From assembly GCA_026936335.1 (NCBI GenBank), contig JAPMXV010000026.1, forward strand, positions 206,272 through 270,271: 64,000 nt of DNA, written 5' to 3'. The position numbers and the translations under genes were made by a program. This DNA comes from Mantamonas sphyraenae STR306 (taxonomy: Eukaryota; Protista; CRuMs). The notes below the pieces were generated by a model. The model was given only the letters and a program-made list of their open reading frames with translations, was not told the origin of the DNA and ran no database searches. Of this stretch, positions 8,079-56,699 are shown piece by piece. Every line of letters begins with the position of its first letter. The stretch's first letter is position 1.

Positions 8079-8120
8079 TGCAGCAGTTGGCGTGTCATGG
8101 CCACGTTCTGGGGCAACACA

Positions 8121-9616
8121 ATGAGCAGCAAGGAGAACAACAGCAACAGCAGCAGCAGCGACTCTGGATCCACAGCTCTTGACTATGACCGCTTCCGGGC
8201 TGTGCTCCTGGGCCAGGCGGTTGGCGATGCGCTTGGGACGACGGTGGAATTCTCTGCGCCCGGCTCGTTTCAGCCGCTGGAGGACATTGTGGGCGGCGGA
8301 CCGTTTCAACTGCTGCCAGGCATGTTTACAGACGACACAAGCATGGCCTTGTGCCAGGGCGAGAGCGTGGTGTTGCACAGGGGCAAGTTTGACGCGTTGG
8401 ACATCAGTCGCGCGTTTGTGTCGTGGTATCACGACGGCCACATGAGTCCCACGGGGGAATGCTTCGACATCGGGGTCAGCACACGGTCTGCACTCAACAT
8501 GTTTGCGCGTACAGACACACCGTACCCAAAGTCGGACAAGGCAGCAGGCAATGGCGGCCTGATGCGCCTGGCGCCGATTGCCATGGCGTACAGCCGTCTG
8601 CCACGCGCGTGCATGGCCCTGTGCGGCAACAGCAGCCGCACAACACATGGAAGTGCCATGAGTGTGCAGAGCTGCGAGTACTGGGGTGGTTTGATTGCGG
8701 GTGCTCTGGCCGGTGTGGACAAGGAAACGCTTGTGGGCGGTGAGGTGTTTAGCGCCACTGGCGAGGGAGCCGGGTACTGGAGCGACGTGGAGGGCAAGCT
8801 GGACAACGACGCGTGGCACGACGCGTACGACATGCAGGCGTACGATGTGGACGAGGCGCACTCGATGGTGAAACAGCTGCAGGAGGTTGCAGTGGAGGCG
8901 TCGTTCAGGAAGCTGCAGCCGCCGGATATCAACAACAGTGGCTTTGTGATCCGGTCGCTGGAGGCTGCGCTGTGGGCTTTCTACACCACGGACGACTTCA
9001 AGTCGGGCCTACTGGCGGCAGTGAATTTGGGCGACGACGCGGACACGGTCGGGGCCATTTACGGCCAGCTGGCAGGAGCCTACTACGGCGTGGGTGGGGA
9101 CAAGGGCATTCCCGAGGAATGGGTTGCCATGCTGTCCATGCGGCCGATCCTGGATGTTCTGTGTGAGGAGCTGTACCGGATCGCGCTTGCATACGACGAC
9201 CCGGAGGCGTGTGAGGAGCTTGCTGCCGCGTTGAAGGAGCACAACGTAGAAAGTGCAGCAGAGTTGCCTCCTTCCGTGATCCGAGACCTGGAGCTGACGT
9301 CGTGTGCAGTGGATGGGCGCGCCGAGGCAGTACTTGCTAGCTGGCGGAAACTGGAGGACATGTGCCGCAACGCGGTGGGGCGCACACACGCGGGACCGCA
9401 CACGTTCAAGAGTGTGTCCGCCATGATGATCACGCAGAAGCCATCGCAGAGGAGTGGCGGGAGAGTGCTGAAGAGCTGAGCAAGGAAGATCAAGACGCGT
9501 TGATTGAGTGTGCCATGGCGTTTTTCGAGCAGGCAAAACCTGCAGTGGAGAGGCGTACGGGCGGAGTCATGGGCTCGTTGATGGGGGCGTTGCTTCAGCA
9601 GCAGAAGAAAGGGTGA
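8121..9616 (+). CDS. ADP-ribosylglycohydrolase (ARH/DraG-like) (one missing base at ~9422)
   Basis: Motifs GQAVGDALG, FTDDTSMAL, CFDIG, GNGGLMR, TTHG, AVNLGDDADTVGAIYGQLAGA. The helical C-terminus DDHAEAIAEEW...QQQKKG* continues in the shifted frame. Confidence 0.88.
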
Positions 9617-9715: not shown

Positions 9716-12700
9716 ATGCCAGTGGTGGTGGTGGTGCTGGTTGTGCTGACATGGTGCGCATGGGCGACGGGCGCAAACGCCTTTTCGGTTGACGCGGTGC
9801 AGGGCACAAGTGGCCTGCCCGCAGGAGGCAATCTGGTGACGATCTTTGGCAGTGGGTTCACTGCCACAGGGAACCAGCGTTGTCGATTTGGACAAAACGA
9901 CGCATACAAAGTGACACCAGCGTCGTTGAACGCGTCGCAGATTGTGTGCCAACAGCCGGCTCTTCCTGCCGGCGTGGCCAAATCGTACCTGCTGGAGGTG
10001 ACTCTGGACGGGACAAACTACATCACGGCAGGCGACTACTGGACATACAGTGAGTTGGAGGCAGTTGTGTTTTTTCGGGGCGAAGCAGGTGCGGGTGTCT
10101 GCACAGGTGCAGGTTGCCATGCCTGAGCAAGAGGGACCCGATGGGGATGGAGAGTCGACGTCAGTGGGCGTGCCCTCCTGAGTGGGCGTGTGTGTTTGAG
10201 AGTGGTGTGCGGGCAGAACACTGACACTGATTTCCGGGTCGAATTTCAGCGACGGCAAGTGTCAAACTCATGCCGGCGGGCCTACAGGGCGATGACCGTC
10301 TGGGCAAGAGCATTGCGTTTGACCCTTCGGGCATGGCGTTCATTGCGAGTGTTTCGCACGAGGACACGGGCAACTCAAACAACGGTGGAGCATGGGGTAA
10401 GCGAGGAGCGCGGGGGAGGAGAATTTTGTTCGTGAGGCGCTGTGGAAACAAGGGCATATATCAGCGCACAGTGACTGACACGGCGCACGGCGCGCATACA
10501 CCGACAGTGTTTGAGTACAACAGCACAACTACTACGTGGGCGAGCAAGGCGTTTCTCAAGCCGTCGGATACGACAGCAAACATGTACACGGGTGAATCAG
10601 GTGAGTGAAACTTGCCAAAATCGCCTAAACTCGCCCCCTCTGGCAGCATGTGTCTTCAACGCACGCAAATTCCATGAGGGTGCAAGCATTGGGAAATGAG
10701 ATTGTGTCGATTCGGTACCGCATTGTGTGTGCGTGGATGTTGCGCTGACACGTTGGACACCTGTGTGCGCAATTGGCCACGGCGCCCCTTCTCCATTCAA
10801 AAGTGGGCATGTCCATGACCCACTGTGTGATGTGCAGTCGCACACGAAACAGCAACAGAGGGTCGTGCTATGTGTTTCGACGATCAGATTACACGCAGGT
10901 GCAGCGGGTGCAGGCGAACAACCCAACGGATGGAGACTACTTTGGCATTTCCGTGGGCTTGTTCCACGACACGCTTGTGGTGGGCGCCTATTTGGAGGAC
11001 TCGGGCGGTTCCAACGCAGGAAACGTGTACCTGTTCCACAAGGACCAGGGCGGAACGGACAACTGGGGCCTTGTGCAGCGCATCAACAACGCGGACATTT
11101 ACCCGGACAACGACCAGCTGGGCCGGTCACTGGCAATCCAGCGTGACTTTTTTGTGGCATGCTCGCGAGATGGTGACGGGTTTCGTGGTCTGTGCCAGGT
11201 GTATGGGACCACCGCGGCGCAGCGTGTGAAAATGGTCAAGCTGTGGGCCGAGCCGTCGTACGAGGATCGAGACTACCGGTTTGGGTCATCGGTGGACGCA
11301 AGCAGCAAGTACATTGCGGTTGGAGCACGCGATGGATCTGTGGACTGGGATGGGGCGACGGTGAATGGCGCGGCGTATGTGTTTGAGCGTGTGCCAGCTG
11401 GCGTGCCCGAGATGGCAGACACCTGGGGTCACGTCAAGACGGTGACGTCTACGGATCTCACGACCGGCAGCTACTTTGGCGGTGGCAGGGACGACCAGAA
11501 CAACAAGGCCATTGGAGTGACAGACTCGGGCGTTTTGCTGGTCGGCGACTCGGAGCACAACAGCAATCGTGGACGCGCCTACGTGTTTCATAGGGACTAC
11601 CCCAGCGCGAACCAATGGGGATTGCTGCGTGTGATTGATGCCGGGGACTCTGGGTCAGGCGACGAGTTTGCCTACGGATTGGCGTTGTCTCCGTTGAGCT
11701 TTGCATCGGGGCACGGTTCAACGACGAGGCTGGCAACAACGCAGGTGCGGTGTATCTGAACCACCCGCAGTGTCCCACAGGCTCATGCCTGGACCTTGTG
11801 TCGTTGCACTGTCGCACGTGCAACGTGGACATTGTCGAGGTGACGCCGAACGCGGCACCGGTTACCGGGGGCACGAGCATCACAGTGCGTTCGGGTCACT
11901 TCCACGGCGCCAACCAAGTGCGCATCGGCAGCATGACCATGTCATGCACTCCGTCAGGCAACCAGGTGCTCGTGTGCACAACGTTGGGCGGGGTGAGTGC
12001 AGATCAAACCGGTGTGACACACACGCCGCGCGTGGCTCAGTCCGGAACCAGCAATGTGACGGTGCCCTTTGCACCAACGTTCCACTTTTACGATGTGGCG
12101 GCGCTGAACATGGCGCTGGACAACAGTGCCGGGTCGACGGACGGCGAGGCGACGCTGCGTGTGACAGGCACGGGCCTGCCTGTGGGTACACACAGCGCAC
12201 GATGCAGGCTAGGAGGAGACAACACATTGTTGGGTATGGTGGAGGTAGTGAGCGCGAGCGAGGCGTTGTGTTACACGCCTGCTGCGACGGCGGCCAATCG
12301 CACCGTGGAAGTTGCACTGGACCAGCAGCATTGGGTCACAGTCGGGTACTTGGACACACGATCTGTGAGCACGCAAGATCTGAGCATGCCGGGTGTGCAG
12401 GATGGCGACCGGTTCGGCAGCTGTCTTGCGTTTTCGGACGAGTATGCGTTTGTGGGTGCGGAAGAGGACGATTCGGATTACGGGTCGGTGCAGGTGTACA
12501 AACAGGATGTCGGGACGGGCGAGTGGACGTTTGTGAAGAAGCTTCAGGCGCCCATTGTGGTGGCTACAGGTCGGTTTGGCGCGTCGTGTGCAGCGCAGTC
12601 GGGATGGCTGGTTGTGGTTGCCCGTTCTTCGCAGGAGGTGTTCTTTTTCGGCCGCCACGTGGGCGGTACGGATAACTGGGGCATGTTCAAGCGGGAGAGC

Positions 12701-15700
12701 GTGGGTACCATGACAACGGGCCAGCTGGGGAACGAACAGGTTTGGATGTCTGAGGACTATTTCATTGTGGGCGACAACGGAGTCGACTTTCCTGGGAAGA
12801 ACGACGTGGGACGCGCATACCTGTACTCGCGTCATGCGGGTGGCACAGACACATGGCGCAAGGTGTTGACCATGGACTCGCCGATTCAAGAGGCGGGCGA
12901 GCTTATGGGTCGCGGAGTGACGGTGAGCACAAACGGCCTGTGGGCAGCGGCAGGCACCGATCGCACAATTGGAGGCACAACCGACTCTGGAGGTGCGTAC
13001 GTGTGGGAGCGAGTGTCCAAGAACATCACAGACGAAGAATGGGCGTACTCGACGTTTGTGGAACCGTTGGTGCGCGAGGCAAACAGGGAGACTGGTCGAG
13101 TCCTTGCGGCCTCGGACATCCACCTGTTCATGTCGCGCTACGAGTCGAACCGAGGCGACGTGGTTGTATTTGAACGCAAGGCGGCGGGCACCTGGGTGCA
13201 GCATCGCGTACTGAAGGTGAAAGACAACGAGCGTGCTGACAATGTTGGACAAGCGCTGGCGTACACCAACGGAGTGCTGGTTGTAGGTTCACCGCTGTCA
13301 GATTATGATGACACGGCAGACACGGGTCGTGTGGACCTGTTTGGGCGCAACTACGGCGGAAGCAACTACTACGGCCACATGCGCACGCTGTTTCGCAGCA
13401 ACATCCAGGCGAGCCGGCGTCAGGGCTACCGCGTGGATGTGGCATGGTGGGGAGACGTACTGACGGCCAACGAAGACTACAACACGCAGCGGGGTCTTGT
13501 GACGGCGTTGGTACCGCGTTGCACAGGGTTCGAAGGCGCAGGAACCGGAAGACGGTATTGCTGGAACATGACGCGATGGGTGTGTGAGCCGTGTCGGTAC
13601 GGAGTGGAGCGTGTGGAGGCAGCCGTGGTCGATGGCGGCCAGGCGTCGGAGCTCGTTATGCACGGGCGAGGTTTGCTGAATGCTGCGAGCGGCGGTCGTG
13701 TGACGATGCGCAACGGAGCAACCGTGCACACGTTGGCTTGCACGGCCACGCAGGATTCGCTGACGATGACGTGCGCCACACCAAGTGTGCCGTTGGGCAG
13801 TGTGTGGACTGTGGACGTGGCCGGGTCGTGGTCGTCGCCGTTCAACGTGACGGCGGTGGTAAAGGCGACTCAGGTGCAAACCAATGCGTTTGGCACGGGC
13901 AGGGTGCACGGCGGACCTGTCATCCAGCTGACGGGCAACAACATGGCAGACACGGGCGCCGTACGGTGCCGCGTGCTGGACCCGAGCAGCGGGCGATCGC
14001 TGGTGCTGGAAGGGCGCTACACAGGTGCAGGTACGGCCGAATGCGTGAGCGGAGTGGGCGGGTTGGCCGCAGGTCGCTACACACTTCAGTTTGCGCAGGG
14101 AGGCACTTACAGCACTGTGTCGACCTCATTTGCCATTTACGAGGACTTTGCGCTCCCGCTGCCGCTGGACTCGAGCGTGGAGGCCGACTGGCGTGTGGGC
14201 GAGAGTCTGGCCATTGGTGAGAATGTGCTTGCAGCGGGAGCGCCCGTTGCAACGTCGTCGGACTATGGCGAAGTGCACATCTACACACGTTTGCAGACGC
14301 AGCCGTACTCGTTTGTGTTTACGAAGCGCCTTCTGCCGCCGCAAAACCAGAACGACAACGAGTTTGGACGTGCAGTGGCCACCACGGACGACTTTTTGTT
14401 TGTGGGCGAACCGAGGTGGAACACACGTACGGGACGGGCCCACTTTTACGCACGACATCACAACGGCGTGCCAAATTCGTTTGGCTTGGTACGCACAGTG
14501 ACGTCGGACGTACAGGCGACTGACAACTACTTTGGACGCAGCCTGGCGGTGAACCCGACGTGGGACCGCTTGGTCATCAGCGAGTATCGTACCAACGGCA
14601 ACCGCGGGCGTTTTCACGTGTTTGAGCGCAACGCCGGCGGCCTCGACAACTGGGGCCGCGTGACCATCATGGAACCGGACAACACCATGCCCAATGGCTT
14701 CCTTGGCTACGGATCGCCAGGTGTGGCGTTGTACGATGACATGATGCTTGCTGGCGCGTACGTGACGAACGTCGAGTCGTACAGCAATGCGGGAAGTGCA
14801 GCGTTGTTTCGAAAGAATCAGGGAGGACCGAACGCATGGGGTCCGATCAAGGTGCTGCGTGCAAACAGCAACCAATTGGGCACAAACGTGTACTTTGGCT
14901 ACTCGGTGGCACTGAGCAAGAACTACGCTGTGTGTGGTGCGTACGAAGACGCCACCGGCGCGACCCGCACGGGTGCAGTGTACGTATTCTACCGCGGCAC
15001 GAACGACGCGTGGGACCAACTGCAGCGCCTGGAGCGTCCCGTGTCTGCAGAAACCGACCCGCACAACTTTGGTGAGGCGGTGGCTGTGCACGAGCGTCCA
15101 GATGGCGCGGTGATGGTCATTGCGGGCGAACCGGAGCGCGACGGCCAGGAGAACGACCGCTACTCGTTGCGCGAGGGAGGCGTGTTTGCATACGGAAACA
15201 CAGTGAAGGGAGGCGCGTTGACTCTGATGCACGCATGGTATGCATCTGTGCCGGCCACAGACCAGCGCTTGGGCAACATTGTGGCTGTTTCGCGAACGGG
15301 GGTACTTGCAGCGGGGGCGTACCTGCTGCGCGACAACGGGGTCACGAACAAAGGCCGCGTGTACACGCTGACCCACAGGTGTGCAGAGACGTACTGTTGG
15401 GACATGTGGAGCAACCGGTGCGCGCCGTGTGGAGTTGGATTGGAGACAGTGGAACCGGCGGCGGTGCGTGCGGGCACGGGTGTGGTCCAGGTCACTGTGA
15501 CGGGATACGGTTTTTGGGACAACAGTACAGTCACGCTGGAGGTGGCTGCAGCGGGCAAGTACAACGTGACAGCGCCATGCACGGTGACCGAGCCGGGCCT
15601 GCGGATGGTGTGTGCGCTAAACACATCTGAGATCCAAGCCTCGGGCACAGGCGTGGCTCGCATGCCTGGTGCCCAGTATGCGTATGCGTACGGGTATACA

Positions 15701-18700
15701 GACCCCGTGTTTGGCGCCTTTGCAAACCCAACGTCGCTGCGCACGTGGAATCCGTCGTCGCCGACGACAGGCGGAGTGACGGTGACCATCTACGGAAACG
15801 GATTCTCAGACGCACCCGGAGCCATGTGTGTGTGGGACAATGCGACATTGTCGGCAACGGTGCAGTACGTGTCCGAGACAGAAGTGCGCTGCCTGACACC
15901 AAAACAGGTTGGCCAACCGTACTACGGTTGGACGACGCTGTATTACACCATCGACGGCGTGTCTTTGGTGTCTGCCGGCGCATTCTACTTCTTCCCCGAC
16001 CGCGTTTCAGTGTACGAGGGCGACTTTGACCAGGATTTGCGCTACGGTCAGGTGGTGGCTGTGGGTCGCGGCGTGATGGTGGCCTCTGCATTCCGCAAGG
16101 CATCAAACGCAGGCGAGGCCAAGTTGTGGTTGGACGACCACAGATGGGTTGCCCAAATTTGCGTATGTCAAGGATCTTGCAGGCACGCCTGCACCCGTTG
16201 CCAACGATCGCTATGGTATATCGCTGGCGGTGTGCTACGACGTGGTCGCTGTGGCAGCTACGTATGCATACGTAAGCGGCAACCGCCAAATGGGACGCGT
16301 GTACCTCTTCCAGCGCGACGAAGGCGGTGCAAACAACTGGGGGCAGTGGCAGACGCTGGAGCACCCCGAGGCACATCTTCTGACCGACCGGTTCTTTGGT
16401 CACAAGCTGTCGTGTCGCGGGCCCAACCTGCTGGCGGTGAACGTGTACCAGGAACGCGGTCCCAACAACGAAGAGCTTGGCGCAGTGTTTATGTACCGTC
16501 GCGGTCTGGGCGTGGCTGGAAGGTACGGGTTGGAACGGCGCATCTTTCCGACATCGCCAAACGCGCGCTACATGGGCAATACGCCCGGAACTGGCCAACG
16601 TGGCGTGGATGTGTCGCAAGACGAGACGCTGTTGATTGTGGGCAACTACGACGCCGACGTGGATGGACAAGCAAACGCTGGAGAGGCGTACATTTTTGGA
16701 CGCAACGTTGGCGGCCGCTACAACTGGGGCTCTGTCAAGGTACTGCGACAGGCCACGGCAACCACAAACTTGCAATACGGTTCTTCGGTGAGCATTGGCA
16801 GCCAGTACGCGGCTGTGGGCTCGTATGCGGATGGGGACGGAAAAGTGTTTGTGTACTCTGCGGCGAGCGGGTACAGTCTTGTGCGCACGCTGGTACCACT
16901 GACAAACGACGGGCCAAACGACTTTGGCTTTGATGTGCTGGTGCAAGAGAGCGTGGTCGCGGGCGTGATTTCGACTTTGTGTACGTAGGCGAGCCGTATG
17001 CCGATCCAGATGGACAAGCCGATGCAGGGCGAACATATGTGTTCAGCGACGCCGGAGCAACGATGGATCGTGTGATTGTGACAAACAACTTTGCGGGATC
17101 GGATCGATGTGGACGCAACCTGAACGCGGCCCCGGATGGCCAGCTGGTGGTGGGCTGTTTCGAGAGCAGCGCACAGTCGACGCGAGGCGGACAACTGCTG
17201 ATCGCGAGTGCGCCATGCCCGGCAGGATACTGCTGGGATGAAAAGTCGTGGTCGTGTGGCGTCACATGCTATCCGCATGAGATCCACCTTCCGTCGTCGT
17301 ATCTGTCGTTGAGTGGATCGAGTGAAATCGAGATCTTGGGTGCAGGATTCTCAGCAAGCACGACGTCCATGACGGTGAGCAATGGGGCAGTGAACCGCAC
17401 GGGCTCCTGCAGCGTGGTGAGCGACGTGAAGCTGCGCTGTGTGTTACCTGCGTTTCCTGTTGCGGGCAAGGTGAACGTGACGTTCAAAGACATGCCGATC
17501 CAAAGGGACATGCTGGAGGCAGAGTACCTTGCTCCGCCGTCCAATCTGGCGACCGACATGCGTGCGGTGACAAGCGTGGGTGGATCGACAGTGACTGTGA
17601 CAGGCAGTGGCCTTGTGGACACGGGTGTGGCGACGTGTCGCTTTTCGTCTGCGCAGGGTGAGAAAGCTTGTGGATGCGACGCTGGTGAGTAGTGGGTACA
17701 TGGAGTGCGTGTCGCCCGTTCTTCCTCTGGGCACCACGGTGCTTTCATTGAGTTTGGACCGGAACGAGTATGTCGAAGTGCAGAGCATGAGCGTGTTGCT
17801 GCAGCAGGCGTTCTATGTGTCGCCCGTGGCTGGAACCAATGACAACGCTGGCCAAGACGGCGTGTACTCGACAGCCACGGGTATGGTGGTGCCCATTTCC
17901 AGGAGCGATGTGCAAGACACCGACCGTGGTGTGATCGACGTGTATCGGCGCAGCGCAAACCTTTCGCAATCCGAGTTTGAGTTTGTCAAGACGCTGCAGC
18001 AACCGGTTGTTGCAAATCAGCGGTTTGGATTGACGGTGGGGTTGAGCAGAGACATGCTCGCGGTAGGTCAGTACCAGCTGGACTCGGACGTGCACAACGA
18101 CGCTGGCGGGGTCTATGTGTACCTGCGGGACCACGGCGGCGTGGACAATTGGGGCGAATGGACAATCCTGCGCATCCCCGACGACTCTGGAGGCCACCAG
18201 TTGGGCCATCGTGTGGCCGTGGGCGGCGACACAGTGTTTGCATCTGCGCCGGGGATGGATTTCGAAAACGCAGGGGACGACGGTGCGTTGTTTGTGTACG
18301 ATCGACACCTGGGTGGCGAAAACGCATTTGGACTGTCGACCATTGTGCGTCGTCCGGAGGGCGTGGCCACGTACCACTGGCTGCGGCTTGTGACGGCGTC
18401 CATGTCTGGCAATCTGGTCGCAGCGAGCGACGCGTACCATGACCACGACGGAACGAACGACGTGGGTCAGGTGACGCTTTTCGGGCGACACCATGGCGGT
18501 TGGAACGCATGGGGTAAAATCAAGACCATTGTGAGCCCACTGTTGGAGGCATCGACGCTGTTTGCGCGGCACATGGCGGTGACGGATACGGCGCTGGTGG
18601 TTGGCACGAACAAACTGCGTGCGTATGTGTTTGAGCGCGATCTGGGAGGGGCCAACAACTGGGGGTTGGCAAAGGAGCTGAGCGAGGCCGGAGTGGACAC

Positions 18701-27700: not shown

Positions 27701-30700
27701 CAGTGCAGGTGGACTGTCGCTGGGCACATTCGAGTCTCAGGCGCTGCTCAGCGGTGCGTTGTGGCGATACAACGGCAGCAGCGCAACGTGGGCAACTGTT
27801 GGTACGCTGGACGCAGGTGCGTCGTTGCCTGCAAGCTTTGCCCCTGGGGTAGTGCTGGTGGGCACACGACTGTTTGAGTGGACCAATGGGACATTTGTGG
27901 AGCGCGCCACGCTGGCTGCCCCCGAGACAGTGACTGGGTTCGCGTTTGGGTCGCAGGTGGCCGTGTCTGCCAGCCACGCCTTTGTGGCTGCGCCAAACCA
28001 GCAAGGACGAGTGTATGTGTACGAGCGCAACTCGCCTAGCGTTGGCGCGTGGTCGCACGTGCACACCGTAACTGCACCGGGGACGGTGGCTGCTTCGGAT
28101 GCGTTTGGAGCGAGCGTCGCTGTGAGCAAGGAGTACCACGGCGCGTACCTGGCCGTGGGTGCACCTGGACGAGCGAGTGTGCATTTGTACGGACGGCACC
28201 AGGGCGGCACAAACACGTGGGGCCTGGTGTCTTCGTTGGAAGGCACGGCGGCCACGCAGTATGGCGCGAGTGTGTCTCTCAGTGCAGCAGACGCACCAGG
28301 CGGCATGATGCTTGCGGTAGGATGCCCTGGCTGTTCAGGAGGGTCTGGGCGTGTGATGGTGACCACTGGAGGAAGCACACCCAGCGTTGTGGCAACACTG
28401 CAGGCTGCGTCGGGCGTGACAGGATTTGGCACGGCGGTGAGCATGCATGTGTACGGACAGCAGCTTGCTGCTGCTGCTTCAACGCGTGTGTACGTGTTTG
28501 GACGTGATGGAAGCGGTGCGTGGACGCGACGACGTGAACTGAGCGTGAGCGGATCACCAGCGTCTGTGCAGTTGACCGCTTCGTCGAGGCTGCTTGCAAG
28601 TGGCAGCGACACGCGGGACGTGATGCCGCTGTGTCCAGCGCCTGGGTGTTTCAACACGGCGCAATGGCAGTGCGAGAGCAGCTGTGGATACCGCATTCGA
28701 GGCATGGATGTGCCGGCCGTGGATGCAGATGTGGCGTCACCCTTGACCGTTTTCGTTGGCAATGCACACGCAAACCGTGTGATCACGTTGTCCAACGCCA
28801 CATACTCGTGTAATGTGACGTGTACGGCCGCGACAGACGCGCCAGACCAACTCCACTGTGTGCTGCCACCTTGGGGCACGGTGGACCAGCTGTCGGTGCG
28901 TCTCGCCGGCAGAACGTTGGCTGCCAACGCATCCGAGACAACATTGTATGTGTATCGCATCACCGTGAATTCGCAGGTAGACAACGGCGATATTTCAGGA
29001 GGGCACGTGGTGTCCATTACGGGCAGTGGGTTCACGGGGGCTGGAAACGTACAAGGCGTGGCCCAGTGTGTGTTTGGCACGCGCGTGGTCAGTGCCACTG
29101 TCGTCAGCAATACGATGATTACGTGTGTTGCACCTGCCGTGACATCGCCGGTTTCGGTGGATCTGAATGTGACGCTGAATGGGCGCGAGTACCTTGCTGC
29201 AGGGCGGTTTGTACATGTGCGCCTGCAGGAACGTGTGGAAGAGAGCGCCAGGAAGCAGGTGGTGTCTCTTGGCTGGACTCAAATCGGGGCGACGGACAAC
29301 GTGAATTACGTCGTCAGCAGGAACATGCGCGTGCAGCAGGCGTGGTACCGCGCCGCAACGGTGACGAGCACTGGCACGGGTTTTGGCTGGGTACACGCGT
29401 ACCAGAATATCATGGCCAGTGGTGGCGATGGGGTGGCGTATTTGTTTGCACGCGGTCCAAACAACACATACGGCGCAGAAGTGCAGCTGTCACATGGTTC
29501 GTTGGCGCAGGCCGGGGAGAACTACGGACGCGTTGTTGCTGTGGGACGAGATGTTGTACTTGCCAGTGCACATCGCTACCAGGATGGAAGTGTTGTCAAC
29601 GCCGGTCGCGTGTTGATGTTTTTGCGCAACCGGGGCGGTGCAGACACGTGGGGATTCCACCAGGAACTGAAGCTGTCGCCGCCGCAAGGGGTCACTTTTG
29701 GCAGGCGGATTGTTGTCAACACGGATCCCGGCAGACAAGACGAACTGATTGTTGTTGGATCGCCACCAAACAACATGGCGTGGCTGTTCCAGCGCGGTGC
29801 GACCAGCAGCCCGGAGCAGCGAGACACGTGGTCTCTGATCAAGACGTTTACGGGCCCCAACAACAACCGCTTCAGTGCGGGGTTGTCGCTGACGTACGAC
29901 TACTTGGTTGTGGGTTCGAGCAACTTCAACGGAGGCCAGGGCAGACTACAGGTGTACCGCCGTGCGGATGGCTGGGCGACGGACACAGCATTGGTGCTGA
30001 CGAAAGAGTCGCCCAGCGCGACGGACTTGCTTGGCGAGAACGTGGCCATCAGTGACGACTCACGTGTTGTGGTTGCGTCTGCAAGCGGGTATGCAGGCGG
30101 ACGCGGAGCGGTGGCTGTGTTTGTGCGCGACGGCCCGACGACTTGGACCAACACACAGGTGCTGCTCGCCTCGGATTCGACAAGCACCTCTGTGAAGCTA
30201 GGTGAGGATGCAGTGGCCATGTCGGACGCGGCCATCGTGGCGACATCTCCTCAGCGAGGCCTGTACGTGTTGACGCCGGCGTGCCTGGAGTATTGCTTTG
30301 ACAAGGTGACATGGAAATGCAGCGCCTGCGAAAAGACGCTGCTGGACACACGGCCGCGCAACATGCCGGAAACGGGAGGCACGCTGCTGCGCGTGTACGG
30401 AAAACGCTTTGAGACGGGCGTGTCGGACACGGTGGAACTGCGCAACGCCAGCAACAACGCCCTGCTGGCAAGCATCACATGCACGGTCCACTCGGACATC
30501 CAGCTTGTGTGCAACGTTCCTGCGTTGGCTTCAAGTGGTCTCACGGGTGCCGTGGCTGTGAATGTGGTGCAAACGGCAACGCAGTCGTCTGTGACGGTGT
30601 CGATGTATCCCAGCGTTGCTGTGACGTCGCTGTCGACACACAATGTGCGAGTCATCGGCGGTGAATCAGTCACACTTACGGGAACAGGGTTTGTGCAGAC

Positions 30701-33700
30701 GGACGAGAGCGTGTGCCGTTTTGGAAACGCGTCCCTGCGCGTACGTGCGCGTGTGTTGAGCAGCTCCCAGGTCGTGTGTGTGACGCCTGCTACGAGTGGA
30801 CCGCGTGCACCAGCGCCCCTGAGCTACAGTCAGAACGAACAACAGTTTGTGAACGGGCCGGATGTGCTGTACTATCGCAAGACATCGCCTGTGTTGTCCT
30901 TCTACAACCTGACCAGCGCGGCGTCGCTGGTGGCTGGTGAGACTCAGGTGACGGCGACTGTGCACCTGCGCACACTCGATGGGCTTGCACATCCTGCGTA
31001 TTACCCGACCCAACAAGTGGATACGGTGACGTGTGATGTGGCCGAGGTCGTGCAAGCGTCTGGATCGGTAGTCCGTGTGCTGTCAAGCAACGGCACAGCA
31101 GTGGTTGACTCATCCACTCTGGCGTGCGTGTTGCCCACCCTGAATGTGTCGTCCAAGTCGTTGGGTGCTGGGAACGAGTACCGCCTGCGCGTCTCTGTGG
31201 ATGGCGTGGCGGTCACGGGCAACGCGCAGCCAACGGTTTATGTTGCGCCAGCGGCCGTGGATCCCGCACGCTGCTCTCTACTTGCGTCTACGACGACCTC
31301 CATGGCTCTGAGCCACTCTGCCGTGCAGGTGGCCAGTGGCGTGCGCGTGGTGGCGCGCGATCGTTTTGGCAACGCACTGACCGACGACGCCACGGTACTG
31401 ATGATGAACGCAACTTACGCGTTGGGCTCTGCCAATGTGCTCAACACAGCGATGACACGAAGTGCCGTCGGGTCGCCTGATTACACCGCTGTGTACACAC
31501 CGACGGCAACGGGTCAGCTCATCCTGCGTGTGACAGCGGGCGGCGTCGACATTGCGGGGTCACCTGTGTTTGTGAGTGTGCTGGGTGCAGCTACGTACAG
31601 TGCGCTTGCGCCAAACCTGGGACCCACCACGGGTGGCACACGCATCACAGTGACAGGCACCAACTTTGTGGCATCGCCGCAAGCACGAGCGTGGATCGGC
31701 AGCGCAGCTTGTGTCGTGGAAGTGATATCCACCACGCAGATGGTGTGCATCACGCCGACCACGGGTCTGTCTGCCAACGCCACGTTGAATTTGACGAACA
31801 ATGGGGTGAACAGCGCGGCCGGCGCTGCGTACTTTAGCACGTACACGCCCGAGACGATGGTTCCTTCGATTGTGCCGAACAACGGCAAGTCGTCGGGCGA
31901 TACAGAGGTGACGATTGTGGGCACTGGCTTTGTGGACAATGCCTATCTGACTTGTCTGTTTGGGGACACGGTGTCTCAGACCAGGGCCACGTTTGTGTCG
32001 AGCACCAAGCTGATCTGCCTGTCACCTCCACGCGACCCGGGACGTGTGCGTGTCGCCGTGTCCAACAACGCACAACAGTACACGGCCGACATTGCTACGG
32101 GAGACACGTTTACGTTCATCGAGCTGTTTTCGCCGCTGTGTCGCCAAACAACGGAGCTGGAGCCGTTCCAGCGGGAGCGACAGGGACTCGGCGTCCCGTA
32201 TCTGGCCAACCTGGCCATAGAGGCCACGGTGACCTCTGCAGATGCGCGCTCGTCCAACGGCAACTCTCTGTCTGGGATCGTCGATGCTGACCGCTGTTGC
32301 CAAAAGACAAACGTGACGCAGGCATTCAAGTGTGGCCTGAACTTTCCGCAGTTCAACACGACCTATCAAAACGACACAGATGTGGTTGCGGTGCAGGTGG
32401 ACCTGGTACGCGAGGCGTTTGTGAACCAGTTTGTGGTGTCGTGGTTCCAGCCGTGCCGCAACCTGCCCAAGGCTTACTACCTGGACATGTGGAACCCGAG
32501 TACGCTCTCGTGGCAAGCGTTGATCACACGTGTGGGCAAGCAAGACGGTGTGGCCTTTGGCTCGCAGCGTCCGTGCTTCTTTGTGCCTTCCGATCAGGCC
32601 GACGCAGCGTTGTGTTCCGACTTTACGACGTCCGAAGTGCGTGGCTCGCGTTTCCGCGTGCGCTGGAACAACACGCTGGCGTTCATGGGCAGCACGGCAT
32701 CGTCGGATGGCGGTTGGTTGTACGAGCTGGAGGTGCATGGCGTGTACACGGACACGCCCGAGAGCGTCCAATTTGCGGGCACCCACAACCAAAGTGTCGC
32801 GGCAGTGGCCCAGCAGTCCTTGGCCACAATCTCCATGCGCACGTACAATCACCAAAACGAACTTTTGGGTGCCAATGACACGAGTTCGGTGTGGATGGCG
32901 ATGAACGTGACACGCGACGGCCAACCTGTGCCCGAAACGATGCTCAGCGGCACACGCAACGTCACGTTTGCGGCAGGCACTGCCAATTTCACAGACTTGG
33001 CACTGGTACGCCCCACAGTGGGCGTGTACCGCCTTCACTTTACGAGCAACCTGGCCGCCGTATCAGCGGTGAGCGCCTATGTCACGGTGTCGGTGGGCCC
33101 TGCCGTGGAGATGCGGCTGATGACGTTTGCCACGCAGACATACGCGACCCAACAGACTGTGGCACTGGCCACGGCCACGCTACACATGTACGACGCAGGC
33201 AACAATGCGGTGGGCGTGTCCGATTCATCACGCACGGTGGTTGCGAGCTTGCGCAACGTGTCGCAGAGTCTGAGTGGCGTGACAAACGCAAGCAGCAGTG
33301 CAGGCGTGGCAACACTGAGCGCCATGTCGCTGACAGCGCCGGTTCCGGGTGTGTATGTTTTGGACTTTGAAACGTTTGGACTGGTGAACGCCTCGACGAC
33401 GTTCACCATCACGTCCGGGGCACCATACACACTGTTGGTGCCGCCTGAGGGGTTCAACAGCACGTTCAAAGTGCAACATGTGGTGCATTTGACCAGCATA
33501 CGCGTCGAGGCGCGCGATGCGAGCAACACACTGACGACGTTGGTCACAGCGCCATTGACCCTGCGCATGGCCAACACAAGCGCTCAGCTGAATGGAAACA
33601 CCAGTGTGGACGTTCCATTTGTGGGTGGCGTGGCACAGGTTGCCGGCTTGACGCTGGGACCCAGTTTGGCCCCAGGAACTTATGTGATGGAGTTGACGAG

Positions 33701-36700
33701 TGCAGTGAGCGCAAGAAACGCCACGGTGGCCATTGTGCTGACCGAAGGTGTGGCCACGACCCTTTCTGTGGTAAACAACAAGCTGGGCTCTGTGCAGGCA
33801 AAGACAAACACGCAGGTCCCGAGTGTGATCGTCCTCGGCTTGGATGCCAGTGGGACGTACAGTGGTGCAGCAGACACAACACGCACTGTGACTGCGGTTC
33901 TGCTGAGCAAACCGAGCGGCGCTGGCAGTGTGCAGCTTCAGGGCACCACGAGCGTGCAGACGTCCGTGTCCAACGCCACCTTTGCCTCGATGACGCTGAG
34001 TCAGCCTGTATTGGGAGGATACGTCATTCGCTTCAGTAGTGCGTCGGTGTCGCACGTAGACGTGACTGTGAATGTGACGGCAGGTGCGGGTGTGGCGTTG
34101 CAGCTGACGTCCGCGCCTGTGGTGAGCAACTTGCGCTCGGAAGTCAACACGAGTGTCCCGAGCATTTCGCTGCGTGTGATTGACGGTGGCGGCAACGATG
34201 TGGGCGCGTTGGATACACAGCAGCGTACGGTGACCATCAACAGCACACAGCTGCAGCTGGAGGGCAATGTGGCCACGAGCAATGCGGGCGTGGTCACGTT
34301 TGGTGCTTTGAGCTTGCGACGACCTGTGCGCGGAACATACAATGTCACTGTGAATAGTGACGGCTTGGAGAGCACCCAAGTGACTCTTGTGGTTGTCCTG
34401 GGCCCCATTGAGAATGTGCTCGGTGAGACGAGCTCGCTGGGCGAGATTGCGAGTGCAGCCGAGGTTGCTCTTGCGCAACTCGTGCTCAATCTGAGGGACG
34501 CCGGCGGGCAAAACGTGGCCATGGAAGACGTGAGCAACACAGTGCTGGTTGTGAGTAGCAACAGCAGCAGCGTGGGTCTGGCGGGCGTGTTGACGTACAA
34601 CTTGACTGCGGCCAACAGCTCACGTGTGGTGCTGCGAAACCTGTTTGTGCGCACCCCTGTGTCTGGACACTATGCGTTGACTGTGACCGTGAGTCGGGCC
34701 CCATTGGGCTTTGTGGGCAATGTCACAGTGCCGTTGCGAGTGCGCTTTGGCGAGCCGTACCGTTTGGTGGCTGCGTGGGATCACGGCAACGTGCTGACGA
34801 CGGCGCCGCGTGTGGATGTGCCCAACGTGACTGTGACTGTGCAGGATTTGGCGGGCAACGACGTGTTGTCCATGCAGCCACTGAATGTGCAGCTCGTGTC
34901 TGCGCAGCTGCAGCTGTTGGGCAACACCACGGCAGCGCTGGACACACGTGCCACAGCGCGTCTGCAAGGCGTGTTTGTCAACGCACCGGCCAACGATTCG
35001 TATCTCCTTACGGTTCAAGCGACAGGTCTGCTGCCGAGCAACCTGACACTTGTGGTAGGTGAGGGCGTGGCGTACAGGCTGAATCTGCTGCAGTTGTCGG
35101 GTGGAACGTACCGTTCCAGTGCATCTGTGGCGCTGTCGTCCGTTGGTGTGGTTGCTGTGGACGTGCGCGGCAACGAAGTGCCCAGTGGGTTGCAGGTGGC
35201 ACGAAATGTCACGCTGGAGAATCTCAACGCGACGGCGGTGGACCTGAACGGTGTGACAGTGCGCTCGATGGTGGCCAATCGCGTCGACTTTACGGGGTTG
35301 ACGCTTCTTGCGCCTCGCGCAGGCGAGTATGTGCTGGAACTGAGCAGCGGGGCGTTGCTGCCCGCCCAGGTCCGTGTGACGGTGACTGTGGGTGAGCCGG
35401 TGGAACTGCGCTTGCACACACCGATGTCGGGTCGCTTTGATTCGGTATCCCTCGAGACAGTGACTGTGTCTGGCGTGGTGGTGCGAGGCTACGATGCTGG
35501 AGGTAGCATGGTGGCAGCGGCGCAACAGGGCGCGTACAACGTGAGTGCGGTGAGCACGGGGGCTGCCGCTCTGCCATGGAAGGACACGAGCGAGCTGCAA
35601 CGCCCTATGGGTGCGGGCGAGGCGTCGTTCTCTCTGGCGTTGCACAAGCCGGCACGTGGCCAGTACCGCGTGACGTTTGTCAGCGGCAGCATGCGCAACA
35701 CCAGTCTAGACGTGGTCATCGCCATGGGGCCTGCATACGCACTGCAGGTAATCAATCCCCGTGCAGCGCCGTACCTGGCTGCAATCACAGTGCAGGTTGC
35801 GCCGCTGCAGGTACGCGTGCTGGACGCAGGTGGAGGAGTGACCAACACGACCGAACTGCAGATCAATGTGACAACGCAGCAAGACGCGCAATCGTTTGGT
35901 GGTGTGCGTAGCGTGACGACAGTGGGTGGCGTGGCTGTGTTTGACACGCTTACGTACGGTCGGCCGTCGCCAGTCCCGCACACGCTGGAATTCGAGGCCA
36001 GCAACCAACTGCGGGTCAACGAGACCCTCACCGTGCTAGTGGGCAACATGGTGCAGCTGAGCCTGGAGAGTGTGCGCACGTTTACGTCTCCGTCGTTGTG
36101 GACGGTGCCTTTGCCGCCGGTGGTGGCTGTGGGCCAGGATCCAGCCGGCAACTTTGTGGGCGACCAAGATGTGCTGGACCGTGTGGTGTACGTGTACATC
36201 AACGCGTCGGCGACGTCGCTGCTGCAGGGTGTCAATTCACGATCGATGGTGGAGAGCAACGTGACGGTGGCCGGACTGTGGCTTGCACGTCCGCCCGCAG
36301 GGGTGTATGTGCTGTCGGTGGTGAGCACCGACTTGGAGGGCCAAGAGGTGTTGGTTACGATTACGGTGGGGCCTGCCACGGGTCTGGAGAGTGTGGCGCA
36401 GGCGATGACGTTGGCGAGCAACGACTCGAGTGTCGTGCCTGCGTTCCGCGTGTATGTCGTGGATGCAGGCGGAAACCGACTGTACGGACAAGATACCGGG
36501 ACACGAGCACTGTCCGTGGACATCAGTGGCAGTGGCCAGGCGAACCTGGGTGGCCAGGTGTCGTTCAACACGGTCGCAGGCGCAGCAAACATCACAGGCG
36601 TGCTTCTGCGTGCGCCTCAGCACGGTTTCTACAACTTGAGTGTCAACACGGCTGGACTCAACGCCACGTCTGTTCCACTGCGTGTTGTGCTGGGCCAAGG

Positions 36701-39700
36701 CGTGCAACTGCTGTACGATGGCGACCAGGGGCGTGCGGTGCCCTCCGAGGCAGAGAGCAACATTGGAAGCGTGGTCATGCGCGTATTGGACGCGAGTGGG
36801 ATCTTTGTGGGTGCATTCGACACGCGTACGCTGATGGTCCGCTTGACCAGCGACACGCTGCAGTTTGTCGGCGGTGTAGAGCCCATGCTGCCCGTCGTAA
36901 ACGGCACAGTGCGCTTCGACAACGTGAGCGTGGTTGCTCCAGTGCAAGGGCTGCATGTGGTGCGCGTGGAGAGCGACATGCTGCGTGGGGTCAATGTGAC
37001 GATGAATGTGACCGAAGGCAGTGCACGTGCGCTGTGGACGGCCGCCTACAGCGAAATCCCTCACCCGTCGCAGTTGAATCTGACCCTGAATGCCATTGAG
37101 GTGCGCACGGTAGACGCTGGCCAAGGATTCACACGCCTTCACCCTGCCGATCTGGACGTACGTGTGGAAGTGGCAGCGGGCAGTGCGCATGTGCAGCTGC
37201 TGGGCACGACTGTGCAGCGCGTGGTCCAGGGCCGCACGGTTTTCAACAACGTGCTGCTTGCTGTGCCGCGTTCGCAGGATGGTGCGTACGAGCTGGAGCT
37301 GCGTGCGTCCGGTCTGAACAGCACACGTGTGCGCGTGCGCATTGTACGTGGCGCGCCGGTGGAGCTGGCGCGCATCAGCAATGTGCCCCAAACGCCACAA
37401 TACCCGTCTCGAGAAGTGGTGAAGCTGAACGCAGACGTGATTGGCGCTCGGGACGCCGGAGGTGCTCTCGTGGGTGAGCGGACTCTGCGCACGTACGCAA
37501 TGTCACAGTACGCTCGCTGAACGGTACCCAGGTGACGCTGCAGGGACAGCTGCGTTTCCTGATGCGAGATGGCAACGTGACGCTGCGCGGGATGGAGTTG
37601 CTTGCTCCTGCAGTGGGGCAGTATCGCCTGATTGTGGAAACGCCCGACACGGCGTCCATTGCGCCGTTTGCCTTTTGGCTGCGGGTCGTGATCGGCCCTG
37701 CACGAAGTTTGCGCGTGCGTACGCCGGCTTCAGGAGTGGCGGTGATGGAAGCGGCGCGGTATGCACGTGTGCCTGTTGTGGATCTGGAGACGGTGGACGC
37801 CGGAGGCAACTTTGTGGGTCAGAGCGACTTTGATCGCGTGGTAAGCGCGACGCTCGTGAGCAGCGCGGGTGGTTTGGACGACAGCACGTTGGATCCCAGG
37901 AGCAGCAGCATGCTGCAGGCGACCGGGAGACAAGCGAGTGCAGCGGCAGGCGTGACGCGATTTGCGCAACTGACGCTGGTGCGTCCGTTCAGAGGACAGC
38001 ACACGGTGCGGTTCACAAGCGGACAACTGGTGGCCACCGAGCTGCGCATCAACGTGACCGACGGCAACGCAACGCGTGTGGCCCTGTCGGTGCGAACCAT
38101 CAGCGTAGCCTATCCCGGAGGCGAAGCTGGACAAACTGCGCTGCCGGCAGTAACGGTACGTGTGGAAGACGAGGGCGGCAATCTGGTGGCTGTGAATGGC
38201 CTGCGTGTGACATCGCGCTTCAACGGGGCTGCGACAGCAACAGGCGCGGCATTGGTCGTTTCATCGCGCAGCGTCGTGGCTGGAAACACAACCAGTGCGT
38301 TGACTGTACAAGGCGTGGCCACGCTGAATGCACTGGTGGCGCCTTCTGGTGTGGGTGAGTATGAGTTTGAACTCACAGCGGATCAGCTGGCAGCGGACAC
38401 GCTGCGTGTGCGCGTGCAGCCTGGGCCTCCGACACGCTTGGCCATCGTGCAACAGCCAAGTGCAGTGTGGGACAATGGACGTTCGGGTGTCAACACGCTC
38501 GCACAGCAACCGATTGTGCAGCTGCAGGACGACGCAGGCAACAATGTCAACGTGACGGGCACGTACTTTGTGACCATTTCGTTCCGAGCCAGTGTGAGCG
38601 CGCCTACGGGCGTGACGTCGTCTGTGGTCGGTGGACTGGCAACGTTTACGCAGTTTGGCTTCCGTGCGCGTCACAACGAACGCTTTGAGCTTGTGTTCTC
38701 GCTGTTGCCGTTCAACCCGGCTGCTCGCGATCTGGTTCTGGCCAACGCGGTTTTCATTCCGCCGTGCGGCCAGTTGAAGGACAACACGGTGGCGTCTGCC
38801 AATGGGCGCGAATGCATCTGTGCGCGTGGCTACACCGCCGTCAACAACGAGCAGCCATGCTTGCCGTGTGATCCGGGCTTCTACAAGAACACAGAAGGTC
38901 CGCTCACCTGTGACTCGTGTCCGAGCAACATGGACACGTCCGGGGCGGTCGGGAGCGTTTCTGTGGATGACTGCACATGCCTCAGTGGATTCTATCGGCT
39001 CAAGGCAGGTGAAACGTGCCGCAAGTGCCCTTCGGGTGGCGTGTGCACACAGGGCCAGGAAGTTCAGCCGCAGCCGGGATTCTTCCGCGAGGCCGGTCAG
39101 GTGGACAGCTTCCACCGGTGCTTCAACGACGCAGCGTGCAAGGGAGGAGCAAACAGCACGTGTGCAGAGGGCCACACAGGTCCGCTGTGTGCGGTGTGTG
39201 CACAGGGCTACGGTTCGTTTGGGTACAAGTGCGAGCCGTGTGGCGAGGAGCAGAACAACTACACGCTGGTGGTGTTGTTCTTTGTGGCGGCTGTGTCGAT
39301 GCTTGCCTTTTTGGTGCGCACGGCGGCGGGCAAGAAGAGCGCCGTGTCGATTATCCTGAAGATCTTCCTCAACTATCTGCAGGTGACCGCATTTGTGGGC
39401 GAGTTCCGCCTTGAGTGGACCGACGAAACGCAGCTTTACTTCCAGTCGACGTCAGTGTCGCTGTTCTCCCTGCAGCTGCACCCCATCGACTGTGCGCTGC
39501 GCATGGACTGGTTCGAACGATTCGAAAGCTACATGCTGTTCCCGCTGTTTGTGCTGTTTGTACCGATGCTGCTGTACGGTGGCGTGTACCTGTGGGTGGC
39601 CATCTTGCGCCCGCTGATGAACCTGGAGCTGCGCAAGCCCGACGAGGTGTACAACACAGAAGTGGGCTCGTCGGAGGAGTCGCGTGTGCGAGAGCTGGAG

Positions 39701-41269
39701 GAGAGCATGAGCGTGCCGCAGGCGTGGCGGGTCAAGCTGACCAACCTGTACACGCTGACAATTTTGGTGACGCTGTTCCTTGCACATCCGATCATCAGCA
39801 AGGTGCTGTTCCAGATCTTCAACTGCGTGCAGCTGGACGACGGGGCCTACCTGGCCGACGACATGAGCGTGAGCTGCGACAGCGCACGGTACAAGAGTTT
39901 CCGCGATTCGTACGGCTACCTGATGGTGGTTGGATACTGCTTTGGCGTGCTGCTGGTCGGTCTGTTTGTGCTGGTGAAGAACAGGAAGAAATTGAACACG
40001 GCGGAGGTGCAGAGCAAGTACCGTTTCCTGTACGACGGCTACTCGACCAAGCGTTTCTACTGGGAAGTTGTGATTATGCTGCGCAAGCTTGTTGTGGTGG
40101 CGTTTATCGTGTTTTTCCGGCGGGAGCCGCTGACGCAGCTGTACAGCGGCCTGTGGATGGCCATGGGTGCGTTTGTGTTGCACCTGTACGCACGTCCGTT
40201 TGCGTCGCCACTGACGACAAATCTGGAGACGCTGTCGTTGGCGACGCAAACGGTGACGCTGATGAGCGGACTTGTGTTTTACAGCGACGAAACGACGGCA
40301 GAGGACGTGCAGGTGCTGTCGACGCTGCTGCTTGTGGTGAATCTGGCCGTGGTGATTGCGTTTGGCGTTGTGTTTGTACACCAGTTTGTGCAACTGGCAC
40401 GCAAGCAGAAGCATGTGGCGGCCATGCAAGAGCAGATGGCCAGGCAGTACGAAGAGATGAAGGCGCACCAGGAGGCGACGCGGCAGCGCGCGGCAATCCT
40501 CAAGACCGTGGTGGAGGAGACGAGCAGCACCCGCAGTGGCAGCACAATGTTGCAGGCCAAGGTGGCGAGCAGCGAGTCGGGAGTGTCGAAGCGAGCAAGC
40601 ATGTACGTGCGCAACCGATCGCAGACGGTGATTGCGATGCAGTCGATGCGAGAGAAGCAGCTACGCTCGTTTGCAGACGCGATGGAAAGTTCTGTGTGGC
40701 GAGAGCGGACGGTCAAAGCAGTGTGCAAGGCAGTGGACGACGGGTGGATGGTGGAAGGTGAGAGTGAGGAGCGACGTGGCCTGCTGGAAGGCATCGTGGC
40801 GTGGTGGCGAAGCGTGGAGAGCGGTGATCAGGAAGGGGAGGAGCTGTTGGACATGGCAAACGAGCTGGTGGAGGCATATCTTGACGACGACAGCGATACG
40901 TTTGTGGACGTGGAGTTTGGTGCGTTGAGCAACACCCTGCGTGTCGTGGGCATGATGGACGCGGAAGCCATTGACAAGAGTGCGTTTGATCTGGTTGTGG
41001 CCAAGGAGTGGGCTCAATCGTGGGACCAGCTGCGCAAACAGCTGGAAGACGCGTACCCAGCCGCAAGCGACAACGAGCAGCTGGAGGAGGCGCACAACAA
41101 GAGGCAGGAGGAAAAGAAGAAGGAGTTGGAGGAGGCGCGCGGAACGGAGGAGGCTGCGGAAGATGACATGGAGCTGATGCTGACGGGGCCGAGCACTCTT
41201 GCGAGTTCTGCAAAGATGGTGGATGGAGAGATGGAGATGAGTGTGTTGGGTGGGGGTGAGGCGGAATGA
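9716..41269 (+). CDS. Giant (~10,350 aa) multi-pass surface protein: 12x FG-GAP propeller/Cys/IPT modules, filamin-like, discoidin-like, 18 Ig-like repeats, Cys-rich, ~9 TM, RGS-like tail
   Basis: Exons are 9716-10049, 10250-10396, 10508-10600 and 10804-41269, joined by three phase-1 GT-AG introns with CTGAC branch points. Five 1-nt indels (~11700, ~16140, ~16961, ~17663, ~37478) each fall mid-repeat, and repairing them restores consensus motifs (GARFNDEAGNNAGAVY, GRDFDFVYVGEP, QGEKLVDATL, VGEADSAHVRNVTV). The corrected length of 31,041 nt is a multiple of 3. Confidence 0.85.
9782..30330 (+). repeat. Twelve tandem protein-level modules (IPT/TIG domains, FG-GAP propeller, Cys linker), period ~1.45-1.86 kb
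   Basis: A Cys linker of the form C-x4-C-[WYF]-x6-C-x2/3-C (variant in some copies) recurs near 11770, 13520, 15380, 17216, 18970, 20830, 22630, 24170, 25670, 27115, 28630 and 30280. FG.S....VGA...G.VY.F blades and GG..VT..G.GF IPT starts lie between the linkers. Confidence 0.85.
32757..38760 (+). repeat. Eighteen tandem ~110-aa Ig-like beta-sandwich repeats
   Basis: The pattern GPA..L ... D(A)GGN.V ... G.A.F..L.L..P..G.Y.L ... V.V..G recurs 18 times in the translation. Confidence 0.8.
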
Positions 41270-44787: not shown

Positions 44788-44801
44788 ACAAAACAAAAGG
44801 C

Positions 44802-52476: not shown

Positions 52477-52535
52477 GGCGAGAGAACGGGGGCGAGGGAA
52501 CGTGTGGTTGGGAAAGGTGGGGCAAGCTGGGCACG

Positions 52536-55958: not shown

Positions 55959-56518
55959 ATGTTGAAGCCAAAGGTTTTGCTTCAGGTGATGGAGCAGGTG
56001 ATGGAGGAGGGAGACGTGACGGGTGCAGCGTAGGTTGTGTGGCGGGCGGGGTTGAGAGGGTCGCGGGGCAGGTCTAACATGCAGCGTGGGCACAGTCTGT
56101 TCAACGCAGAAGGGTCTGTGGTGGCGTCTGTTGGCGCAAAGGAATCGAACAAGCTGGTGGGCGCAATCACGTGAGTGGAGAGGGCGTGGTATTGGGTAGC
56201 GGGGCAGAGTGGAGATCCACGCATTTCGAGGAGGATGAGAAAACGGCTGACACAGGCGCGGGTAGGTCGAACATCTGGTCGGCGTATGTGAACTCGGGCG
56301 AATCGTCGCTGGACGACGGGGAAATGGACGATGGGGAGCTGGAAGTGCTGCTGATTGACAACACGAGCGGACGGCTGGCGATTACGGACGTGGCCGGGCT
56401 GACTCTGTGCGTGTACGCGGGAGAGGACGTGGAGCTGGGAACACTGAAGCACAAATTGGATACTCTGGCGGAGTATCTTCGCCCTCAGCTGGACCAGCTT
56501 GGCGCGGTGGATGTGTAA
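55959..56518 (+). CDS. LAMTOR2: Ragulator subunit LAMTOR2 (roadblock) (exons 55959-56029, 56096-56170, 56266-56518)
   Basis: The spliced product reads MLKPKVLLQVM...ALFNAEGSVVA...GAITSNIWSAY...LTLCVYA...VELGTLKHKL..LAEYL. The two GT-AG introns carry CTAAC and CTGAC branch points. Confidence 0.88.
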
Positions 56519-56699
56519 GAGCGGAACTGGGGGGGAGGAGGAGTTGGGAGGAGGGGAGGAAAATGAAGGACGGGTTTGCATTGGGATGCGAGGATGGGAG
56601 GGTTGGAGTTTGGGTCTTGGGTTGAAAAGGGGGTGGAGCGGGCGTGCGCACTTGGGGCCAAGAGGAAGAAGAGAGTGCAGGGTTCAGCAGAGAAAGAGA

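Follow-up and report, generated by a model that had tools for sequence, protein, structure and literature searches.

Evidence for a giant multi-propeller surface protein with a nine-helix membrane unit and an RGS-like tail in Mantamonas sphyraenae

Introduction

Can a series of broken open reading frames near a telomere of Mantamonas sphyraenae STR306 be read as one gene and, if so, what kind of protein would it encode? The question is raised by positions 9716 to 41269 of the window analyzed here, a stretch of 64,000 nucleotides (assembly GCA_026936335.1, contig JAPMXV010000026.1, positions 206,272 to 270,271 of the forward strand), in which a preliminary description had joined several reading frames into one multi-pass surface receptor. 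The locus is almost certainly a single intact gene for one giant cell-surface protein, a statement that concerns the gene and its anatomy alone.

M. sphyraenae is a marine gliding flagellate of 3-5 micrometres. Its genome assembly comprises 25.06 Mb in 78 contigs, and the telomeric end of one of these makes up the window, with a TTAGGG array at 63650-64000. FALCON produced the assembly from PacBio reads, and Illumina reads served to polish it; the organism, a diploid gliding flagellate, belongs to the CRuMs (PMC10492846).

Gene structure and frame breaks

The gene comprises four exons on the plus strand, to which all its coordinates refer. Exon 1 (9716-10049) starts with an ATG at 9716, encodes a signal peptide of about 22 amino acids (a hydrophobic N-terminus) and the first IPT/TIG domain (Pfam TIG, 40.6 bits), and is followed by a GT donor at 10050. 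Exon 2 (10250-10396), in phase with exon 1, translates into the FG-GAP blade that opens propeller 1, exon 3 (10508-10600) supplies another part of the same propeller, and exon 4 (10804-41269, 30,466 nucleotides as assembled) ends at a TGA stop and consists of six stop-free pieces separated by five frame breaks. The three predicted introns (10050-10249, 10397-10507 and 10601-10803; 200, 111 and 203 nucleotides) are of the GT-AG type, have compatible phases and carry a CTGAC branch motif (at −29, −33 and −59, respectively); in the third, the acceptor is the first AG past this motif. The proposed arrangement of three small 5' exons and one exon of about 30.5 kb in a single frame is thus borne out. 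GC content by codon position is of the coding type in the pieces of exon 4. With corrections of +1, −1, +1, −1 and +1 (net +1 base), the product would have 10,346 amino acids (~1.09 MDa), a length obtained by arithmetic only; the searches were run on the pieces.

Short-read evidence covers breaks 1 to 4. At break 1 (11691-11703) and break 3 (16956-16975), the assembly lacks one base, and the contigs of runs X1 and X2 (depth 37-52) show an insertion, behind 11703 in both runs for the former and behind 16974 (X2) or 16975 (X1) for the latter. At break 2 (16128-16134), the assembly has one surplus base, which is deleted at 16132 (X2) or 16134 (X1), among several allelic differences; this suggests that polishing failed at heterozygous sites around this break. 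Break 4 (17657-17666), where there is again one surplus base, lies near the edge of the compared stretch and is seen as loose contig ends, with no indel row of its own: the contigs of X1 and X4 end at 17664-17665 and pick up the reference one base on. At each of these four breaks, the short-read change is in the direction that rejoins the frame. The runs are probably the genome study's own Illumina data; as such, they are well suited to detecting assembly error but are not an independent sample. Programmed frameshifts and micro-introns were rejected at breaks 1-4 because the short-read contigs hold the frame-restoring base. In the region 16080-16140, around break 2, the two short-read runs differ from each other at a cluster of sites.

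Break 5 (37474-37508), in stalk repeat 15, was judged from a homologue alignment. The Mantamonas plastica transcript product P0165 aligns on both sides of the break, meeting at residue 5109 without a gap, so that one base is probably missing from the assembly (~37485). A 35-nucleotide GT-AG intron would also keep the frame but is disfavored, because it has no branch motif and P0165 is ungapped.

The five frame breaks in the assembly could alternatively mark a pseudogene or several neighboring genes, all the more as the read evidence is confined to breaks 1-4 and no RNA is on record. However, four of the breaks are absent from the short-read contigs, P0165 is continuous across the fifth, all five lie within domains, and there is no in-frame stop over 10,000 codons of the gene, all of which makes this explanation highly improbable. 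The preliminary description of one giant multi-pass surface protein masked by indels is thus in agreement with both the reads (four of the five breaks) and the homologues. In practice, the case also shows that single-base errors cut the largest genes of this assembly, which will be absent from its annotation or fragmented in it.

Anatomy of the ectodomain

Blade and IPT profiles together with an alignment of the modules resolve the head (10250-30332) into twelve modules, with propellers starting near 10250, 12380, 14168, 16010, 17847, 19698, 21468, 23244, 24789, 26358, 27810 and 29340. Each module has the order IPT-IPT-propeller-Cys, its FG-GAP_2 propeller being closed by one of twelve four-cysteine motifs, and takes up about 600 amino acids in the early part of the array and less in modules 8-12; the IPT domains, two per module by profile, number about 27 in total. 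Thus, the twelve modules predicted earlier are present, although with two IPT domains each rather than one, and the element previously named a knot is described here only as a four-cysteine motif. Most propeller pairs are only 23-31% identical; therefore, judging from sequence divergence, the array appears to be old, and its propellers could bind different ligands. Propellers 8-12 (253-314 amino acids) are more eroded than the earlier ones.

Module 3, the only one of the twelve that was modeled, is predicted to contain two beta-sandwiches as well as a propeller with seven blades (pLDDT, a per-residue confidence score, of 80), and the best matches of this model among solved structures are integrin alpha chains (Foldseek, E = 1e-11). 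By sequence, however, the propellers are of the FG-GAP_2 type, which is common in large bacterial secreted proteins, and a motif scan of the protein found neither integrin calcium-binding loops nor the GFFKR motif. The description of the propellers as integrin-alpha-like is accordingly apt for the fold, as modeled in module 3, but not for the sequence. Searches of the protein pieces against Pfam returned TIG, FG-GAP_2 and Ephrin_rec_like over the cut-off, whereas Filamin (23.3 bits), DUF7630 (23.4 bits, cut-off 27) and TRP (26.8 bits, cut-off 28.5) were under it.

The head is followed by a neck (30342-32771) that consists of an IPT pair, an Ig-like domain, a filamin-like domain (31302-31565), a second IPT pair and a discoidin-like region (~32200-32740). 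The filamin-like assignment thus corresponds to a sub-threshold score, and the discoidin-like one to a collinear Rigifila protein, P0019, with a weak F5/8 type C match at that place; a PDB sequence search with the discoidin-like region gave no match. Both domains, named in the preliminary description, are retained here in this weaker sense. The repeat profile then confirms the count of 18 Ig-like repeats, about 105 amino acids each, in the stalk (32772-38750). These repeats are free of cysteine and contain 2.8 N-glycosylation sequons per 100 amino acids, and from their sequences we infer an Ig fold. Between stalk and membrane lies a Cys-rich collar (38762-39247) that was correctly recognized as being of the GCC2/GCC3 type (Ephrin_rec_like, 37.5 bits, over the cut-off), and its cysteines are invariant among paralogues. 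With a GCC2/GCC3 repeat, a DUF7630-like region and a conserved nine-helix unit, the protein qualifies for the Ephrin_rec_like/DUF7630 family of multi-pass proteins.

Membrane unit and cytoplasmic tail

The membrane unit (39248-40381) had been predicted to contain about nine transmembrane helices, and a structural model built with 122 homologues has nine long helices, with pLDDT mostly over 90. The odd number fits an N-terminus outside and a tail inside the cell, as far as the model goes. It is the most conserved part of the protein (~50% identity among paralogues), with invariant polar residues within the helices (Q, W-E, R-K, Q). The Pfam label 'TRP' denotes PF06011, the fungal Pkd2/FLC family, which is distinct from the six-helix channels. 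The sub-threshold match to this family spans only profile positions 274-419 of 426, i.e. the last helices, and rises over the cut-off in the two closest paralogues, 51% identical (30.1 and 34.7 bits). Fold searches of the unit against solved structures gave only background-level matches (best Z 7.5); TRP channels were not among the matches, and there was no significant match to structures of G-protein-coupled receptors (GPCRs), with no GPS family in the Pfam scans. A canonical TRP channel (six helices, pore loop, tetramer) was thus ruled out, as was, given that GAIN/GPS hits were also missing, a GPCR or adhesion GPCR. Accordingly, the unit is 'TRP-like', as it was first termed, in the sense of relatedness to the nine-helix Pkd2/FLC family but not of similarity to any solved TRP channel. 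Predicted structures of uncharacterized eukaryotic proteins do match it (TM score 0.6 over ~420-470 residues), and the family that shares collar and membrane unit has 12,667 database representatives, in some of which the membrane unit is fused to RGS, TIR or START tails. The unit is thus common to thousands of uncharacterized eukaryotic proteins, and none of its structures has been solved.

The cytoplasmic tail was listed in the preliminary description, but the degenerate RGS-like domain in it (40661-41044, beyond a predicted long helix) was left unnamed. A profile built from paralogue repeats gives this segment 48 bits, and one built from the four M. plastica repeats alone gives it 36 bits, this protein being left out of both profiles. 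The RGS homology is transitive, via relatives that score RGS over the cut-off: the tail of an M. plastica relative reaches 59.8 bits for RGS (cut-off 23.9) and matches RGS14 in the PDB (E = 3.5e-4). In the alignment, the closest paralogues have tandem tail repeats, the first of which is retained here. A PDB profile search of the tail returned only poxvirus D5 (E = 0.01), taken as chance, an Atlas feature search of the tail was blank for RGS, and the predicted model has low confidence over this region.

Relatives within and beyond Mantamonas

The M. sphyraenae genome contains at least ~75 loci with the Cys-rich and transmembrane base, some in unbroken frames of up to 10,900 amino acids, and across the family the heads vary over a constant base. 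An RGS-like tail is present in 15 of the 22 closest genes (in three of these, RGS is over the cut-off in place), and in a quick tree the protein nests among tandem-RGS receptors of both Mantamonas species (support of 98 in the Shimodaira-Hasegawa-like approximate likelihood ratio test, SH-aLRT). Its closest database relatives are complete M. plastica transcript reading frames of 6,000-6,800 amino acids with two IPT domains and 17 stalk repeats; the stalk has 8-14 repeats in Rigifila and 8 in Fabomonas. The IPT-filamin-discoidin-stalk chassis is common to M. plastica and Rigifila, and in part to Fabomonas and Thecamonas.

FG-GAP_2 blades occur upstream of the base on contigs C25 (many), C16 and C51, and the paralogue on the first of these (L006, C25:37111-57426, minus strand) has these together with IPT domains and the same base, and its RGS-like repeats are in tandem. 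Another member lies on the contig studied here (C26 ~134000-169000, minus strand; L025/L031/L032) in an unbroken frame of 10,900 amino acids; its propeller repeats are of the SBBP type, and its tail is weakly RGS-like. Each of the 150 best matches has at most one or two FG-GAP propellers (P0099, P0132); P0099 (1,652 amino acids) has one, together with IPT domains and the same collar and membrane base. TIG-repeat proteins of 6,400-7,600 amino acids with Ephrin_rec_like were also noted (P0176, P0177 and P0184, one of them from Aureococcus), which do not have this membrane unit. A literature search found no paper on the twelve-propeller architecture. FG-GAP proteins with at least seven helices were remarked on by Kang et al. 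but excluded as non-integrins (10.1101/2020.04.29.069435). Novelty had been claimed for the architecture as a whole; this applies to the twelve-fold array with an RGS-like tail, which turned up neither elsewhere nor in the papers searched, but not to the union of propeller and multi-pass unit, because such proteins exist in databases (P0099) and in the literature (the study just cited). Thus, the architecture is undescribed, yet it is made of known parts and is one of many in the genome.

Comparison with known systems

Integrin alpha chains share the seven-bladed FG-GAP propeller but have one propeller and one helix, compared with twelve and nine here, and the present protein has no thigh or calf leg domain in the Pfam scans; together with the missing calcium loops and GFFKR, this rules out an integrin alpha chain. 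A genome search for the canonical integrin alpha leg was blank, a result taken as uninformative. An integrin beta-I domain (117 bits) is encoded at C56:80264-80923 (minus strand), in a frame of 1,966 amino acids. Plexins and MET carry a propeller, a Cys-rich region and IPT domains in series, and adhesion GPCRs and polycystin-1 place a giant adhesive ectodomain on a multi-pass signaling unit. Unlike these, the protein has no Sema domain, no GAIN/GPS match and neither a 7TM nor a TRP fold. A plexin or MET homologue was ruled out, given that the Pfam scans gave IPT only and no Sema or PSI hit.

The nearest sequence relatives of the propellers are bacterial multi-propeller FG-GAP_2 proteins (PF14312), some with seven complete propellers in 4,400-5,100 amino acids, their bacterial origin being read from companion domains and named relatives. 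In contrast to the present protein, their propellers occur alongside fibronectin III, cadherin or TSP3 domains, and a comparable membrane unit is missing. The uncharacterized eukaryotic multi-pass proteins with Ephrin_rec_like and DUF7630 have the same collar and membrane unit, whereas twelve propellers and an RGS-like tail are added here. Fungal Pkd2/FLC proteins (PF06011) resemble the protein in nine predicted helices and in the weak profile match over the last of these, but have a small Ig-like lipid-binding cap and lack the stalk, the propellers and an RGS domain. Many protists are known to possess membrane-bound RGS receptors, and the 7TM-RGS receptors of plants (RGS1), Trichomonas, Naegleria and Ectocarpus are likewise multi-pass proteins with an RGS-type end (PMC3971589); here, however, there are nine helices of another family, an ectodomain of 9,800 amino acids and an RGS domain from which the usual residues of a GTPase-activating protein (GAP) are missing.

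Possible functions

We tentatively favor, at somewhat less than an even chance, the view that the protein is a multivalent receptor for contact or prey and is coupled to G-protein signaling. The glycosylated 18-repeat stalk would hold the head ~100 nm off the membrane, and the twelve diverged propellers would hang as beads on an IPT backbone, the two ends of a closed propeller exiting on the same side; from typical domain sizes, full extension is estimated at ~200-250 nm at most. The propellers may bind substrate, biofilm or bacterial prey through avidity, and ligand or load would pass via the disulfide-rich collar to the helix bundle, where a change could alter how readily the RGS-like domain reaches one of three G-alpha proteins. 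The relatives with tail RGS domains, the three G-alpha genes of the genome and the complete M. plastica transcript reading frames speak for this receptor, and adhesion or prey sensing is what we infer for a species that glides on surfaces (PMC10492846).

Several points weigh on the other side. No sequencing run is recorded as RNA; run X4 (depth 2-4) may be an RNA run, by elimination only. Direct Pfam search of the tail found no RGS, the second RGS repeat of the relatives is missing, and an RGS tail is absent from many members of the family, in which the membrane unit must therefore have a role of its own. GAPs of the RGS4 type depend on Glu87, Asn88 and Asn128, and these residues are not at the matching places of the alignment, as placed by eye. 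GAP activity is therefore doubtful, and docking of a G-alpha or another partner appears more likely than a speed-up of GTP hydrolysis. It is the RGS-like tail that more likely serves as the signaling end.

The very large, repetitive and glycosylated ectodomain, the ~75 paralogues with shuffled heads, the eroding RGS tail and the degenerate propellers 8-12 could also be accounted for by a structural adhesin or coat filament, i.e. a gliding-substrate tether or coat in which membrane unit and tail merely anchor and sort. One helix would suffice as an anchor, though, whereas no other part is as conserved as the nine-helix unit, which is widely represented in databases, and the RGS repeats are retained in both Mantamonas species; we consider such a filament rather unlikely. 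Still less probable is a tethered mechanosensitive calcium channel. In this reading, which follows a proposal made for fission-yeast Pkd2, leverage by the ectodomain would open the nine-helix unit, and the tail would be a vestige or modulator. Yeast Pkd2 is predicted to have nine helices beneath an Ig-like cap (10.1101/2022.08.11.503631) and, when reconstituted, passed calcium upon membrane stretch (PMC9727806); these findings, the PF06011 match that exceeds the cut-off in paralogues and the invariant polar residues inside the helices are consistent with a channel. Yet in this protein the match is partial and under the cut-off, no solved channel is similar to the model, and fusion of the membrane unit to RGS, TIR or START tails is more in keeping with a receptor than with a pore.

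There is also a broader proposition, which we regard as doubtful: the ~75 nine-helix giants of Mantamonas, together with related proteins of further surface-gliding flagellates that branch near the base of Amorphea, may constitute an undescribed adhesion-receptor class, in which a variable megadalton head is read out via an unsolved membrane fold onto RGS and G proteins; in its strongest form, the propeller array would supply the alpha-type partner that the integrin beta-I protein of this genome is missing. With an RGS-like domain and three G-alpha genes, the intracellular end of this receptor family can be tested, which makes approachable the question of how gliding flagellates sense surfaces and prey, in a lineage, the CRuMs, that adjoins the ancestor of animals, fungi and amoebae.

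Neighboring genes

Downstream of the gene, the window encodes a kelch-repeat protein with a filamin-like stretch (41440-44787, plus strand), followed by an F-box/leucine-rich repeat protein (44598-47444, plus strand) and a two-domain fluoride exporter of the CrcB/Fluc type (47792-49045, plus strand). An ADP-ribosylglycohydrolase (7398-9479, plus strand), a PARG with a PBZ finger (50470-52554, minus strand) and a NUDIX hydrolase (56448-57608, plus strand) lie within 50 kb near the telomere, perhaps by chance. Between 49000 and 60000, a strong G-over-C skew (up to 0.74) is observed, with GGA runs towards the telomere and long frames without a Pfam match.

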